Shown here: one piece after another, positions 6,001 to 18,173 of the stretch
Position numbering within the stretch: the first letter of the stretch is position 1
Layout: every line of letters starts with the position of its first letter
Source: Adineta vaga
Taxonomy: Eukaryota; Animalia; Rotifera
Reading direction: 5' to 3'
Assembly (NCBI GenBank): GCA_021613535.1
Contig: CP075496.1
Span: 4,340,001-4,404,000 of the forward strand
Length of the DNA: 64,000 nt
Position numbers and translations under genes: made by a program
Notes under the pieces: model-generated
What the model was told of the DNA's origin: nothing
What the model saw: only the letters and a program-made list of their open reading frames with translations
Database searches by the model: none

Positions 6001-9000
6001 GATAAACCTCCATTTACATCGAAATGATTGAGAAGTTTATCAGCAATTATCATTGGATCATCGATAAATGTACGGTAGGTTAAAAGAAAGTCTTGAACAA
6101 AATAAGGATCATCAATTAATTGATGTTCATTCATCAGTAAATCGAGTAATTTAGCCGTTGTAGCCTATTAGGAAAAAAGCAGATGGAAATCAATTCCTCT
6201 GTTATGAAATCTTTCGATTTGTTCATAGAGAAAATGAATAGCAAAGAAAAAGTCTCTTTTGATAGTATGTCAGAGGGTGATTACTCGACATTTCTCATTT
6301 GATTTTCCAATTAACATACATATATATCCCAAAAGATTAGAACTATAATGAAATCACCATTTCTAAGTACGTACATACTACTGATTGACTCGATTTTACA
6401 GAAAAAAACCCGAACAATTATGTATGATAAGAAAAATGACCTTGTTTATCCTTGAAACTTACTTTGATAACTATTTCACGTGGTGCATGATATTCGTCAT
6501 CATTAATACGTATTTCTTTCACCATAACAATTTTTTCATCTTCTTCGATTTTTCGAATATTTTTCTCTCCCTAAAAATCATCAAGAAAAATCATCAACGA
6601 AAAAATTCAATCAAGAGAAAATTTACTTGATTTAATATTGCATAATAATCATTTTGAGCAACAACAACAAATTGACAATCATCTACACGAGTTTTCATTA
6701 TTCCTGCATGACAATATTGATCAAGTGTGGGTCCACAACCAAAACTTTGTCCAACAGTTAACGTTCGAATTGGTTCACCATCAGTTGTTTCATCATCAAC
6801 AATTCCATTGATGATAACTGACCAAGAATCATACCGTTCACCATCATTCATCACAACAGTTTGAGCTTTTTCAACTTGAGCATAAACAAGAACTTTACAT
6901 AATTCACGTCGAACATGTAATGTTAAATTAGTAAACGCCTAGAATTACATTGATAATTATATATTTACAAGAGAGGAAAAATAAGATTCTTACAGGAAAA
7001 TGTAGGAGAAAGTCTAAAATATATTCAATATCATCATCAGTACGATCATTTGCATCTTTCATTAAAGCTTCTCGAACATGATCATGTATAGGAAATAAAT
7101 GCTAAAGAAAATTATTCAAATTCTATTATCAAAAATGGCTAATCATCGATTTAATTACTTCAGATGATGTTTCAGATTCATCATCACTTTCATGAACACT
7201 AATACAACGACTCAATCCGCCATCTTCATTTTGTCCTAAACAGTTTTCTCCATTATTTATTATTAAACAATCTTCTCCATTTGTTGATGATTGCATCATA
7301 TCTGATCCAGAATAAGCACTTGATGTATCACTTGCACGTGAATGTGAACTACGTATCATTGATGAATGAATCTCATTGATATTTGCTACTGTAACCGATC
7401 GCTAAAGAAGAAGAAAAACAAGACGAACAATTACATGTTGTTTAAAAAGATTTTTATTTTTAATATTTACTTGTCGATTTTGGGCACTTTTCTTTCGATG
7501 AAGTGCTAATACTGTACTAGAATCCATCGAAGACGTTTGTTGTTCTTCTGTTGGAGTTATAACTTGCTCTTTTTGACGATTATGTTTACTACCGATACGC
7601 TTCAGTGATTCGTTATTTTGTACAGCATGATCGAGCTCGGGATAATCAATCTACATGAAGTAAAACGAAATAAAAGTATAGAAGAGAAAAAAAAAGAGAA
7701 ATGAGAAACAGAACAGAATATACATCAAGGTGTGATTAGAAGTAATTTTTTTTTCTTCGTCTTTCTATTTTCAATGATGAAAGAAATTATATATATGATG
7801 TCTACTTACAACAAGCATTTCCGATGGTTCGAGTACAACACATTCATTGATCCGATATTGATTACTAGGAGTTCGTTTACCAAAACTGTTAAAATAGAAG
7901 AAAAAAAAAGGCGAACGATTATGTCATGAACATACACATAAATGTCGCTCGATCTATTCAAGGACAACGCTAGATGTGTAATGATGAGAGGGAGAAAGTG
8001 AGGGACTGAGTAAGATGGTGTTAGTGTAGTAGAAGTAATAGTGGTATGTGCATAGTAAAAAAAAAGAACGAACAAGGTTAACAAATAAACATGAAAAGAC
8101 GAAGAGGGAAAAATTGATCTGGTCTCTCTCTCTCTCTCTTTCCCTCCTTCTGTATCCCAAAGGATACATAAAAATGTCGAAGATCATGATTAAGTATAGC
8201 AAAAAGAAAAAAAAAGAAAAACGAATTCTTCCGTTTTTCTTTACACGTACCTAGCTCGTGGTAAATACATTGTAGATTCGATAAAAATTGAACCGGATAG
8301 AAGAATGTACCAACAAGTATTCAATTCACCACGGCTAGAAAAATAAAAAAATATAAATGATAACAATGTGTACTATACGTGTGAGTTCTATCGTTATTCT
8401 CTTCATGATATACATATATGTATAAATGTTTACATACACCTCTGTGTCCTTTGCGTCGTTTTTCTCTCTGGTGAACATTTGTGCACACGCGTTTGTATGC
8501 CTGCTTACACTCTAACAAACAATCACACTTCATTTTCGTCTCCTTCTCCTTCTTTTTTTTATTGTATACTAGCATAACAATGAGAGTAGAAGACCAAATG
8601 TCAAAGTGTATCAACGATGAAAAAAACAATCGAATACTACTTATATTCAGATTGAAAAGTTTTTAACAATGATCTTAGTCAAGGTTCTAATCTAATTTCT
8701 TCATATAATCATATATTTTATCTTCGATACATGATGCAACATCTCACTTTAGACATGAAGTATATGATGGCACATCTATCATCAGAGATAGATAGATAAT
8801 TGACCGTGACCGTATTCTAACAATGAGTTGTAGCTATCTAAGTGCATAATCATGATGATGAATGTATATCTCAATGTACTATCATCAAGAAATAGTAGAC
8901 ATAACAATTTGAGGAGAAGAAGAAGAAGAAGAAGAAGTATAGTGTCATCTCGTATGTAAAAGGATGAATAGAAAACAAACAAACAAAAAAGAAACCCAAA

Positions 9001-12994: not shown

Positions 12995-13874
12995 TCAAAA
13001 TAGAGTTTTTAATAGACGATAATGATCTTTAGTATAACAACGACATCTTTACAATACAATCGCTTGATATATATGTTTTCTATTCATTCATCGATAGATA
13101 GAGAAGAATTCGAGTTATAGAAGTCAAAATATATCTACCTCTATAAATTGTTCACGATTTTTGGCTTTCTATTGAATGAAATATGAAAAATTTTGTTTGT
13201 TCATGTTGTAATTAATAAGTGCAGAGCATTGTATGACTTTCAGTTCAATCAAAAATATGATTATAAAGAATAAAGAGCAAGAAATCAAGAAGTTTAATAA
13301 CGAAAAAATTGTTTTTTGATGAGTAAATGAAGTTAATCAATTGAACGAGAAAGAGAACTGAATCACGCATGTTAATCATCGACACTCAATTTTCTTAAGG
13401 TCTAGACATTCCATTTGTTTCCGTTACATTTACTTTAAACACTAAATATTTGACACACGACTTATGTGGATATTATCCATTAGTTGTTTTCATTTCAAAG
13501 AAACCTATCTATACAACACAATCTATCTATTTAGTCTAAAAGAAGTTTTACGTTATAGATTTTCAGCATTTCATATAAATTCTTTAATCACAATGATCAA
13601 AATCGAGTGGGTGAATGGTGATTAATTTTTGTTAATTTCATTTAAATAAAACGAAAAATTAGACGAATTTATCATTGCAGAGGGCGGAAGATTATTGTTA
13701 AATATTCAAGGTATTATACATAAACAATTTGATTGATATTTTCTTTGACCAATAATTTTGTTTCTTTTTTTTAATATTCTAATTCACGGTAATAAATATA
13801 TATAAACACATTTCATCACCATTCGTTCATTATAAATTTACTCTAAATTTTTTCGATAATCGGATTTTATAGAT

Positions 13875-16800
13875 ATGTTGAGTCCAACTCGTTCATCAGC
13901 ACAAGCAATACTTAAAACAGTTGTTACTACTGCATCAACAATACTTCAAGAAAGTGCAAGTACAAGCGTAGAACAAAAAGAAGACTCGAATGATGCAGAT
14001 GATAATGAACCATTGAAGAAAAAATTTAAAGATGATTCTGATATCGAAGTAAACTTTTCTAATAAAATTTTCTCGTTTAGTTATTTCAGTCTTTTGGTTT
14101 TTTTCTTCAGGTAGACAGTTCCATAGATACAACCAGTACTCATGTTCGACAACGACTACCAAAGAAACGAAAAGCTTGTGTTTCATTTGGTTATTGCGGT
14201 ATGTTTATAATTTACACATAGTAATTCAAATTTTATTTGTATTTCAATTTAGGTGCTGGCTATTTTGGTCTTCAACGGTAAGAAAAATGATAATTGAATA
14301 TCTTTTAAAAATTCTCTTTATCATTAGAAATGCAAAAGATAAAATACATCGAACTATTGAAGATGAATTAGTTGAAGCTTTCGTTAAAGTTGGTGCTATA
14401 CCACAAGCACATTGCGATGATATGTCCAAAGTACGTGTTTTTCTTCTTTTGAAACGACTTGTTAAGATTCTATAGATTATTATAAAAATTTTATATTTGA
14501 TTTAGATGGCATTTCAACGAGCAGCTCGAACGGATAAAGGTGTATCTGCTGTTGCCAATCTCGTTTCATTAAAAATAGTTCCATTAGAAAATCTAACACA
14601 ACTTGTGAATGAACAATTACCAAAACAAATTCGAATGTTTGGTAACTGAAAAAAAAAGTATTATTTCGGATAGAAGAAAAAAGTCAATTCTCTTCTTCTA
14701 GGTTTTAAACGTGTTGCTGCTAGTTTTAATAGCAAAAATAATTGTGATGCACGAACTTATATTTATATTCTACCAACATATGCTTTTTGTCCAATTGAAG
14801 AGGTTTGATATTGTAAAAAAAGACTGTTCTATTTCAATACTATATTATTTAGATTACCAGTGAATCATATCGAGTTACATGTATGTATTAATTTTATCAA
14901 CTGAATTAAATTTGAGATATTCTTTGTCATTCTCATTTATTGAAATCTTTCGATTGAATGATAGTATGAGAAGTTTTTACACTGAATATTAAAATGAAAC
15001 AAACAAGAGGATAATGAAGAACTAGTATAAGAATTTGGATAATAATATAAATAATAACTATATAATAGTAATAAGAATGACAGTATGATTGTGAAGTCAT
15101 ATATTTAATTCGACGAAATGTAGAGATCATTGTAATAATCAATGAAATGAAATAAACGTTATTAATGTGATAATTATTAAGATTAATGACCAAAGACAAT
15201 GGATTAAAAATATTGTATCAATTGATTGACATGTTTTAAAGATGAACATGTTTTTGTTTATTGATTAGTTTTGGCGCTATGAAATGACTTTCTTTGTCTC
15301 TTTTAGCTGAAATATTACAATTAGTTAAAGATGTAGCAAATGAATATGTTGGTTCTCATAATTTTCATAATTTTACATCGGGTAAAAAATTTACTGATCC
15401 ATCAGCACGACGACATATTTTAAACATTAATGTAAATCAAATCAAATTAGATTTCAAATGACACAACGATCTATTTCTTTTGTCTTTAGATTGCTGATCC
15501 ATATATAAAAGAAAATGTCGAATTTACAACAATTACTATCAAAGGCCAAAGTTTTATGTTGCATCAAATTCGAAAAATGATCAGTTAGTGGATATGACTT
15601 TTTTTGATAGAATAGATGAATTTTACTGAAAGATATTTTTTTAGGTCTTATTATTGCCATTGTTCGTGGTGTTGCTAGTCGAGATACAATTCAACAAGCC
15701 TACAACGCTGATAAGGTATGTATCTATCAAGATCATAGTAAAGATTGTTATGGAGATTATTGATATAACGAACGGGAACTTTTTTTTATAGATTGATATT
15801 CCAAAAGCACCACCACTTGGTCTTGTATTACAAAAAGTAAGTTTCTCTATAATAGTTTTCGTATTTAAAGTGATTGATATTCTGTTTTAGCTTCATTATG
15901 ATCGATATGATAAAAAATTTGGTAGTGATGGTCAACATGAAACATTAACTTGGGAAGAAGTTGAAGTATATTGATTTCTTTTGAAAACTGGAGATATAAA
16001 ATTATTTCTCATCATTTCTGTTTAGAATGAAGTAACAAAATTCAAGGAAGAGATCATCATTCCACACATCGTCAAAAAAGAAATTGCCGATAAATCGTAT
16101 CCTTTTTTATATAAAATGATTGAAAACAGAGAGAAAGAGAGAGAAAAGAGTGTTCTAATGCTTCTTCTTCTTCTTGTAGTTCAGTTTGTATATTTCCTTG
16201 ACTTTTATCTTTATTCCCATTGCTCAGTATGTTGGCTTATTTGGAGCGATTAATTGTTCATTCATTTTCTCCAATGGGTAGCGAGATTGATTGGCGTCTT
16301 TCACTTCCCTATCAGATTGCTTTTCAAAAAGTGAGAACAAAACTAAATCCGATGGTAAGAATCGTTTATTTTATTATTTCAAACTTATTCATTAGACTGA
16401 GAATTTACCCCACTCATCCTTCATCAATCTCTCTAGTTCGTCTTTGTTCTCCTTAACTTTCATTTTTTCATCAGTATGTTTTCATGGCTTTTTTTCGGTC
16501 CGATGCTTTCACGTTATGAACATAGCAGTCCATATTTCTCCATCGTTACATATATTATTCCCACATTACTCGGACGTCTACGTCATTTACCTTTTGTACA
16601 AAAGATGCTTGAAAATGCTTTAATATATGAGGTATGTATTTTCTCATTCTCTCTTCTTCCTCATGAGTCTGTGTGTGTGTATATGAGAATCAGTTTCATT
16701 CGTCAATATGTTTTTCCTTGACTTTCGAAATCTCAGTTTGTTCAAATGGCTTGCATTTTTACCATGCCATCATTTTGATCAACTATTACCGTTTTATCCT

Positions 16801-17028
16801 CCCGGAGCATATACTGGTGTTGGTCGAGGATTGTATCTCTTACAGCAGCAACAGGGAAGTTCTGCCAAGGTATATGTTTGCCATGATACTTTTGTTTTTA
16901 TAAAAACGAAAACCCAATGATTCAATTTAATATATAATTTTGTTTTTGATAACTTTCTCTTTCTTTCTTTCTTTCTTTCTTTCTTTTAGTTGGATGATGA
17001 CGACGATGATAATGGTGCTGATGAATAA
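13875..17028 (+). CDS. PUS1: tRNA pseudouridine synthase 1 (TruA family) with alternative penultimate exons
   Basis: Motifs [25 protein letters not shown] (catalytic Asp), [65 protein letters not shown]. Common last exon 16990-17028 ([12 protein letters not shown]). Possible extra 5' exons near 13593/13681. Confidence 0.95.
16097..16736 (+). other. U12-type (minor) intron: one GTATCCTTT donor with three alternative U12 branch point/acceptor sets
   Basis: Donor GTATCCTTT at 16097. Branch points TTTCCTTGAC (16193-16202), TTCTCCTTAAC (16447-16457) and TTTTTCCTTGAC (16711-16722). Acceptor AGs end at 16227, 16474 and 16736. Confidence 0.88.
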
Positions 17029-17240
17029 ACTTAGTTTAGTTTTTGTTATATTGTTTCTGTTTTTTTTTGTAATCATTGTGTTGAATGATAAAAGAAGAAG
17101 AAGAAGAACAAGAACAAGACGTGGTGTGACCGATATTTGACTTTCAAATTTCACAAAAAAAGAATATTCAACACACCTTGTTGCTGTTTTTTGTTAGATA
17201 AACAACTGTTTGCATTCTTCGGTATCCATACAAGTTTAGT

Positions 17241-18173
17241 ATGGATATTGTATTGAATATTTACGACCGATGGTTATTAACTCCATATGTATATCCGAAA
17301 GAAGGTTGGCCTGAAGATAATCTTCTTCGACAAATCATTTCCTTAACTGTCTTGATCAATATTCATGCAGTTCTTCTATATTTTTTCTTGGGCACTTTTA
17401 GTTATTTGTTTTTATTTGATAAAAAACAAATGAAACATCCACTGTTCTTAAAAGTATGTATCATCAATGGTGAATAAAACTGTTTTTCTTTAACGAAATA
17501 GAGGATTATTTCTAGAATCAAATTCGGCAAGAAATCAAAGTTTCACTACAAAATATTCCATTTATGAGTATTCCAACAATTATTATTTTCTTATTCGAAA
17601 TACGAGGATATTCAAAACTCTACGACAGTTCACAACATTCATATGGTAAGAAAATGAAATAAATTGTTTGATTTTTCTTTTTATAAATTCTTTCATATTT
17701 GGTTAGGTCTAATTTCCTTTTTAAAAGAATTTGGGAGTTTTTTATTTTTCACTGATATGTTGATTTATTTCATTCATCGTGGTTTACATCATCGTCTTGT
17801 TTATAAACATTGTCATAAACTTCATCATAAATGGATTGTTCCAACACCATTTGCCAGTCATGCATTTCAATGGCTTGACGGTTTTCTTCAAAGTTTACCA
17901 TATCATATTTATGTCTTCTTATTTCCATTACATAAAATATCTTATTTACTCTTCTTTCTCTTCGTCAATTTTTGGACAGTAAGCATTCATGATGGAAACT
18001 ATTCTGTTCCAAAATTGTTTCAACCCTTTGTCAATGGCGCAGCACATCATAACGATCATCATCAATATTATGATTGTAATTATGGACAGTTCTTCACATT
18101 TTGGGATAAACTCATGAGTTCGTTTCGTCAACCAATAGTTTACAACGAAAACAAGAAGAAGAATATTGATTAA
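17241..18173 (+). CDS. SC5D: Sterol C5-desaturase / lathosterol oxidase, 3 exons
   Basis: [31 protein letters not shown] resembles the animal SC5D N-terminus; His boxes HRGLHH, HKLHH, HHNDHH and PTPFASHAF. Confidence 0.93.

Follow-up and report, generated by a model that had tools for sequence, protein, structure and literature searches.

Three tandem alternative exons at the 3' end of PUS1 in the rotifer Adineta vaga: a probable choice gated by the minor spliceosome

We describe a cluster of three tandem alternative exons, here called A, B and C, at the 3' end of the PUS1 gene of the rotifer Adineta vaga. The gene lies on the forward strand of a 64,000-nucleotide (nt) stretch of contig CP075496.1 (assembly GCA_021613535.1, positions 4,340,001 to 4,404,000), hereafter called the window, and coordinates refer to this window. 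Its thirteenth constant exon is followed by what is, judged by its letters, the gene's sole U12-type donor, and then by the three exons, each with its own U12-type branch site in front and a U2-type donor behind; a common last exon closes the gene. Exons A and C are both used in RNA and are both joined to the last exon, the architecture is conserved in related loci, and all three exons are under coding constraint. We consider it probable that the cluster is a choice of one among three PUS1 tails, gated by the minor spliceosome through the incompatibility of U2 and U12 splice sites. The observation as such is real. As far as A and C are concerned, the interpretation holds in the main; the use of B is strongly suggested but unproven, and the mechanism is plausible.

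The exon cluster and its use in RNA

The motif GTATCCTTT at 16097 meets the U12 5' splice site consensus /RTATCCTT. Branch sites of the form TCCTTRAC are found ahead of A, B and C, at 26, 18 and 15 nt from the respective AG. The spacers between the exons start with GTAAGA (A-B) and GTATGT (B-C) and finish with TCCTTRAC…AG, i.e. by sequence the two ends of each spacer belong to two different spliceosome types. The lengths of the three exons are all 1 mod 3 and their starting phase is the same. A script run on the reading frames showed that the frame is kept only if a single exon is included, and that exon skipping as well as double or triple inclusion leads to a frameshift. The first-pass annotation, which had been made from the sequence alone, had proposed this arrangement together with the rule of exactly one inclusion, and its donor, exons, branch sites, GT donors and last exon all proved to be correctly placed.

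The number of TCCTTRAC motifs in the window is not large in itself (5 matches, both strands; shuffle mean 2.98). Three of the five fall on the coding strand in a stretch of 530 nt, where each directly precedes an AG that opens an in-phase open reading frame (ORF); the Poisson expectation for such a stretch is ~0.012, which gives P ~3e-7. The donor motif GTATCCTT is not enriched in the window by itself (2 found vs 1.4 expected), so that the significance rests on the arrangement, the conservation and the RNA joints. The other GTATCCTT is on the minus strand at 8160-8167, and it is probably a chance match because there is no TCCTTRAC on that strand anywhere in the window. A copy of TCCTTAAC at 17340, inside the first exon of the neighbouring fatty-acid hydroxylase gene, also looks like a chance match.

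The use of the exons was followed in the contigs of four runs from four studies, placed on 13700-17400. Run X10 behaves as DNA, with an even cover of exons and introns and no joints. Runs X1, X12 and X5 are transcript-derived: every constant joint is present and the depth in the 426-nt intron 7 is zero. In these three runs exon 13 is joined both to A (16096>16228; contig depths 6.5, 7.2 and 10.7) and to C (16096>16737; 13.4, 18.8 and 5.5). The region 16948-17125 is masked as repeat, so joins into 16990 are visible only as loose ends. In X1 and X12, the sequence that follows the contig ends at 16354 (A) and at 16869 (C) is in each case TTGGATGATGACGACGATGATAATGGTGC, with which the last exon begins, and it leads on into TTGGATGATGAC…. 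No A>B, B>C or A>C joint is found among the 15 joints listed for the RNA contigs, a list that leaves out one further joint and three loose ends. The entry junctions that had been predicted from the sequence are thus present for A and C in three studies, with 16096>16475 not among the 15 listed joints; likewise, the predicted joining of each exon to 16990 is seen for A and C in X1 and X12, with no contig leading from B to the last exon. The expected lack of A>B and B>C joins agrees with the 15 listed joints.

The spacers themselves are retained in the transcript contigs. The A-B spacer is present in contigs 16325-16504 and 16228-16504, and the B-C spacer in contig 16475-16766, which is found in three studies. 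An unspliced form, 16067-16947, is also present, at depths similar to those of the spliced forms. The U12 intron itself is retained in X1 and X12 as well, and the other introns of PUS1 leave no trace. Splicing around the cluster hence seems to be slow or inefficient at both steps.

Some polymorphism between the assembly and the runs was seen in the same region. The (TG)n repeat of the B-C spacer has an insertion of TGTGTGTG at 16669 in three of the four runs (X12, X5 and X10), and a 6-nt deletion at 16161 in the U12 intron occurs in X12 and X10. Moreover, X5 and X10 have several single-nucleotide variants in common, as would be expected from a second allele or strain.

Conservation and origin of the three exons

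Exon 5 was searched against 1.84 billion representatives, and the hits were ORFs of exon size in related genomes. Together with an exon-B search this gave 17 related loci that cover the cluster wholly or partly, and a panel of 13 distinct orthologous sequences was drawn up; three further loci, from more distant rotifers (L009, L010 and L015), stop short of the PUS1 C-terminus. The donor TC/GTATCCTTTT, the branch sites TTCCTTGAC, CTCCTTAAC and TTCCTTGAC, the exon lengths 127/157/133 and the GT donors are kept wherever the 17 loci cover them, the sole deviations being in L011, a long-read contig of 3x coverage. The intronic blocks of at least 7 nt that are invariant in the 13 sequences are AAATC/GTATCCTTTT at the donor, TTTCCTTGAC for A, TTCTCCTTAACT for B, TTCCTTGACT for C, and C's acceptor. 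The distance from branch site to AG varies across the loci, i.e. 25-36 nt for A and 14-23 nt for B. The last exon is conserved in L012 and L014.

In comparison with the syntenic locus L007, identity is 88% for exon A, 94% for B and 90% for C, in each case without gaps, and the spacers are 56-64% identical and gapped (A-B 62%, B-C 56%); the ordinary introns are 51-70% identical. The ratio of nonsynonymous to synonymous substitution rates (dN/dS) between the window and L007 is 0.30 for A, 0.10 for B and 0.06 for C, with 0.15 for the pooled constant exons. In the panel of 13 the values are 0.41, 0.07 and 0.14, and there are neither stops nor indels. The variable sites by codon position show a bias towards the third position (A 17/8/18, B 6/2/24, C 16/7/24). 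In other words, all three exons are under purifying selection, and conservation is highest in B, with 88-96% amino-acid identity. The first-pass annotation had named as damaging the case that only one exon is ever spliced and the others are not conserved; what is found is splicing of A and C and conservation of all three.

Further information on B comes from its 3' boundary. The donor of B varies only within the splice consensus (GTATGT, GTACGT, GTAAGT), and the residues that would be encoded there change with it. The ORF tails that result from reading past B are unrelated between species. Together with the substitution pattern, these two features show that B is a coding exon under constraint and that its donor has been preserved.

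As to the origin of the exons, the PUS1 proteins of other animals in our comparison have K-S-M-L-x-W-L-x-x-L-P-x-H-x-Y/F at the C-terminal helix. The human chain 4IQM reads …ERSMAQWLSTLPIHNFSA, and the human motif SMAQWLSTLPIHNF, which the earlier annotation had given, is indeed found in it. Exons A and C fit this motif in register; B has MFSWL only, i.e. the first ~five residues align. In a profile comparison the in-register matches of A with C (P = 0.0017) and of B with C (P = 0.006) were significant and that of A with B was not, which gives modest statistical support to the earlier suggestion that the three exon starts are paralogous, for the pairs A-C and B-C. Queried singly, A, B and C had no matches in PDB and Pfam, and an ESM Atlas search with B returned no credible relative. 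B has a hydrophobic 52-residue segment without detectable relatives in these three resources. A metagenome scan with exon B returned close relatives only; it used very strict peptide patterns that are uninformative on older lineages.

A more distant lineage (L028-L030) has 60% identity in exon 5 and different neighbour genes. Here exons 8-13 and a C-type end are in one ORF (L028:6395-7015, also in L029 and L030), with no intron at the position of the cluster, no U12 donor and no A or B; the GAYTGVGR motif of C is kept. The L028 locus has 25% GC, with a laminin gene upstream and an EF-Tu-like gene downstream, and its ORF ends without the acidic last exon. The fused ORF fits a 3'-biased intron loss. 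Since this lineage has the C type only, C is taken as the ancestral type. Exons A and B would then be best explained, from the sequence comparison, as tandem duplicates of a C-type exon, copied along with the U12 acceptor in front of it and the U2 donor behind it. The lineage of L028 has either lost the cluster, e.g. via complementary DNA of the C isoform, or never had it.

Proposed mechanism and competing explanations

The U11/U12 di-snRNP (small nuclear ribonucleoprotein complex) recognises donor and branch site together, and introns with mixed ends are spliced by neither spliceosome. A downstream donor bound by U1 can, moreover, promote the splicing of an upstream U12 intron via exon definition. 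On this basis we propose that the U11/U12 di-snRNP pairs the single donor at the end of constant exon 13 with one of the three branch sites, and that this one pairing would decide which exon is joined to exon 13. The major spliceosome would then join the U2 donor behind the chosen exon to the sole U2 acceptor, that of the short acidic exon. The spacers, with a U2-type 5' end and a U12-type 3' end, should be removable by neither spliceosome alone, and the U12 donor should be unable to use the U2 acceptor; if so, skipping and multiple inclusion would both be blocked at splicing. The frame would act as a second safeguard, as with lengths of 1 mod 3 any leak would be frameshifted. The predicted outcome is a set of PUS1 isoforms, each with its own last helix and tail.

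The core of these ideas had been put forward in the first-pass annotation, which regarded the two spacers as unspliceable hybrids and the choice of the U12 branch point as the selector of three C-termini. The hybrid ends are confirmed by sequence, and the spacers are retained in contigs with no joint that removes them among the 15 listed. Use of alternative tails is borne out by RNA for A and C, B being without listed joints, and dependence on the minor spliceosome is predicted from the sequence.

The components that the mechanism calls for are encoded in the genome. The small nuclear RNAs (snRNAs) U12 (78 bits), U6atac (83), U11 (82) and U4atac (93) are each present in one copy above the Rfam gathering scores, and the check for these four snRNAs that had been advised is thereby answered. 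The elements by which they recognise their targets are preserved: U12 has GAGUAAGGAAAA, the partner of UUCCUURAC in base pairing, U11 starts with AAAAAGGGC at its 5' end, and U6atac has AAGGAGAGA.

A number of points weigh against our reading. As regards B, no joint into or out of this exon is among the 15 listed. In X1, X12 and X5, contig 16475-16766 crosses the donor of B at 16631 unbroken. This contig alone accounts for the whole depth of bin 16552-16675, which means that there is no contig from B to the last exon in the three runs. As regards the mechanism, X5 has the U12 intron removed (13>A), yet both spacers and the last intron are retained, and the U2-dependent step thus seems to be slow or inefficient. 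The motif TCCTTAAC would also pass as a U2 branch site by consensus, and pyrimidines are abundant in the acceptor regions, i.e. the sequence permits U2 use. The branch-to-AG distance of A (25-36 nt) is long for a U12 intron, judged by vertebrate introns. Finally, the cluster is documented in close relatives only, the distant lineage being without an intron here, and contig data can neither show absence nor measure levels.

The retention in X5 may reflect that, after 13>A, three U2 donors would compete for one acceptor and a productive mRNA would come from the donor of A only. In favour of B, in each of X1, X12 and X5 one contig has its first base precisely at 16475, and a second contig stops at 16504 (16475 + 29). 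Boundaries of this kind are the signature of a second path that joins the assembly graph at the predicted acceptor of B. When the two listed contigs are added up, the depth of bin 16428-16551 is still higher by about one 30-nt contig in each RNA run. The nearby variants at 16434 and 16460 do not explain the boundaries, since they would split contigs at other places.

The alternative that survives best is a two-way switch between A and C in which B is not joined to the last exon. Transcripts that are entered at B would then read through its donor and would give a spacer-encoded tail or a non-productive RNA. The unbroken contig across 16631, with the bin depth that it alone accounts for, and the lack of a listed B joint speak for this explanation. 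On the other hand, B is the most constrained exon by dN/dS and by codon position, its length is invariant at 157 nt and in frame with the last exon, its donor stays a splice consensus while the encoded residues change, and the read-through tails differ between species in both sequence and length. It should also be noted that X5 lacks contigs from A and from C to the last exon, although both joins exist in X1 and X12, so that a missing contig is weak evidence. We therefore consider the two-way switch unlikely.

Somewhat less likely still is that exclusivity is brought about mainly by frameshift and nonsense-mediated decay, or by competition between acceptors, without a role of incompatibility and with acceptors that U2 can use. 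The lengths of 1 mod 3, with early stops upon joint inclusion, the pyrimidine-rich acceptor regions and the fit of TTAAC to the U2 branch consensus agree with this view, and in a human survey frame incompatibility was by far commoner in such clusters (PMC5740500). Against it, the spacers are longer than the normal introns and have good GT donors, yet they are retained, whereas the ordinary introns leave no trace. The U12 branch motifs are invariant over 9-12 nt in 13 sequences, which is far beyond the need of a U2 branch site, and the donor GTATCCTTTT is a poor U1 site. The lengths bear on a further candidate, steric hindrance, as the cause of exclusivity: the spacers have 105-120 nt and the ordinary introns of the gene 50-76 nt, so that steric hindrance is not needed to explain exclusion, and it was rejected.

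That A and B are pseudo-exons, i.e. tandem copies of C in decay, or that the motifs are arranged by chance, is most improbable and already contradicted: the weak similarity among the exons and the C-only state of the distant lineage are in its favour, but A is spliced in the RNA of three studies, A and B are under purifying selection without stops or indels in the 13 sequences, the architecture and branch sites are conserved, and the motif arrangement has the low probability given above. The minor-spliceosome-gated choice of one among three tails thus remains the reading that we prefer.

Gene context and comparison with known systems

The identity of the gene was examined with single exons as queries. 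Exon 8 has yeast Pus1 (7R9G) and human PUS1 (4IQM) as its top matches in PDB, two exons match PF01416 weakly in Pfam, the scores being weak because the queries have only 30-40 residues, and exon 5 carries the catalytic Asp motif; all this agrees with the original assignment to PUS1. No second PUS1 copy and no second exon B was found in the genome (100.8 Mb, 6 contigs), i.e. PUS1 is single-copy in it. The exon phases were derived by hand from the letters of 13500-17700 (Table 1). All 12 constant introns appear as GT..AG joints in RNA contigs, in up to three studies.

Table 1. Features of the PUS1 gene and of its alternative exon cluster in the window.
Feature	Position	Strand	Remark
PUS1 gene, start to stop codon	13875..17028	+	15 exons: 13 constant, one of A/B/C, common last exon
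Constant exon 1	13875-14048	+	
Constant exon 2	14111-14198	+	
Constant exon 3	14253-14277	+	
Constant exon 4	14328-14430	+	
Constant exon 5	14506-14641	+	carries catalytic Asp motif
Constant exon 6	14702-14802	+	
Constant exon 7	14853-14880	+	
Constant exon 8	15307-15431	+	best PDB matches 7R9G, 4IQM
Constant exon 9	15490-15583	+	
Constant exon 10	15645-15715	+	
Constant exon 11	15792-15836	+	
Constant exon 12	15891-15965	+	
Constant exon 13	16026-16096	+	71 nt, phase 2 end (…ADK + TC); joints 15965>16026, 16096>16228/16737
U12-type 5' splice site GTATCCTTT	16097..16105	+	directly 3' of exon 13; TC/GTATCCTTTT
U12 branch site of exon A, TTCCTTGAC	16194..16202	+	branch A 26 nt ahead of the G of AG (16226-16227)
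Exon A	16228..16354	+	127 nt, ends …KLNPM, followed by U2 donor GTAAGA
A-B spacer	16355..16474	+	120 nt; hybrid, opens with U2 donor and closes with U12 branch site and AG
U12 branch site of exon B, CTCCTTAAC	16449..16457	+	TCCTTAAC core 16450-16457; 18 nt to AG (16473-16474)
Exon B	16475..16631	+	157 nt, ends …ALIYE, followed by U2 donor GTATGT
B-C spacer	16632..16736	+	105 nt, hybrid, contains polymorphic (TG)n run
U12 branch site of exon C, TTCCTTGAC	16714..16722	+	15 nt to AG (16735-16736)
Exon C	16737..16869	+	133 nt, …GAYTGVGRG…SSAK, followed by U2 donor GTATAT
Last intron	16870..16989	+	U2 type, (TTTC)n polypyrimidine tract and AG
Common last coding exon	16990..17028	+	short, acidic, ends TAA

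A joint 15430>15490 with one extra C was seen in X12 at the boundary of exons 8 and 9. It matches a T>C variant in the DNA run X10 at 15431, the final base of exon 8, and is an allele, not an alternative splice site. The downstream neighbour, from 17241, is a gene of the fatty-acid hydroxylase family (PF04116 in the syntenic locus, L007:6288-6920); the upstream neighbour in the syntenic loci, on the opposite strand, is an SRF-type MADS-box gene.

Other minor introns were looked for with a strict donor-plus-branch pattern. It gave 12 matches genome-wide, one of them the PUS1 intron, vs 10 in a reversed control, so that the count carries no statistical weight. Several short candidates of this pattern (in G000, the sites C1:4269917, C2:3283019, C2:5540316, C4:6745263, C4:12161330 and others) start with ATATCCTTT and contain TTCCTTAAC; by these motifs they look like AT-AC minor introns.

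The closest known system is that of exons 6a and 6b of the JNK genes (MAPK8/9/10). There, too, tandem alternative exons are split by an intron whose ends belong to different spliceosomes, and one pure U12 and one pure U2 flanking partner lead to the inclusion of exactly one exon (PMC1874599). The polarity is the opposite, however. Acceptor and donor are of the U2 and U12 type, respectively, in the JNK exons, and of the U12 and U2 type in the PUS1 exons, so that the PUS1 spacers (U2 5' end, U12 3' end) are the mirror image of the JNK hybrid intron, which combines a U12 5' splice site with a U2 3' end (PMC1874599); the first-pass annotation had given the JNK hybrid the wrong way round. The PUS1 locus differs also in having three exons instead of two, and in that it belongs to an invertebrate, encodes an RNA-modifying enzyme and alters the C-terminus. 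Among human mutually exclusive exon clusters, U2/U12 incompatibility was reported for 5 of 629, i.e. 0.79% (Hatje et al. 2017, PMC5740500), and the principle proposed for these is the same as at the PUS1 locus. According to Ivanov and Pervouchine (2018, PMC6071210) the mechanism works only where a cluster has two exons and no more; the PUS1 locus would be a three-exon case.

The choice of one exon from a tandem array of more than two is shared with clusters of the Dscam exon 6 type, which work by docking and selector sequences. The PUS1 locus differs from these in that, in the 13 sequences, no intronic element is conserved except the U12 donor and branch sites. A mechanism of competing RNA structures is thus not indicated, and we rejected it.

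With human and yeast PUS1 (TruA family) the rotifer protein shares the catalytic core and the helix motif S-M-x-x-W-L-x-x-L-P-x-H-x-F, which is fitted by A and C. The known human PUS1 isoforms differ at the N-terminus (mitochondrial vs nuclear), whereas the rotifer variation replaces the last helix and the tail. In the human enzyme the C-terminal helices pack on the back of the enzyme and cover the surface that serves as the dimer interface in TruA; they block dimerisation of the TruA type as well as the TruA-type orientation of transfer RNA (PMC3983220). This is not simply the RNA-binding surface to which the first-pass annotation had assigned them. The C-terminal extension has been proposed as an explanation of atypical substrate binding (PMC3983220; title of Czudnochowski et al. 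2013).

The incompatibility of U2 and U12 splice sites is known as a cause of mutual exclusion, from very few clusters that are mainly those of vertebrate JNK genes. New would be the number of three exons, the polarity opposite to that of JNK, the occurrence in an invertebrate lineage poor in minor introns, and the RNA-modifying enzyme. If our reading is true, this may be the first cluster of more than two exons under U2/U12 incompatibility. It indicates that an architecture in which a lone U12 donor and a lone U2 acceptor flank a series of exons, each preceded by a U12 acceptor and followed by a U2 donor, can be extended to three exons and, in principle, beyond. With alternative tails on a pseudouridine synthase of many substrates, an RNA-modifying enzyme would be diversified in a novel manner; the tails replace the helix that in human PUS1 controls the monomer state and the orientation of transfer RNA. 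The loss of minor introns in bdelloid rotifers has been called "extreme but incomplete" (PMC10639083), and the case therefore bears on why the minor spliceosome is retained in them. We tentatively suggest that a minor intron was kept, and its acceptor triplicated, to serve as a one-shot selector of three PUS1 tails in a lineage that has lost nearly all minor introns, and that B may give an isoform peculiar to this lineage, distinct in its localisation, its partner or the range of its RNA substrates. If this is so, the cluster would provide a functional reason for the persistence of the minor spliceosome in bdelloid rotifers.

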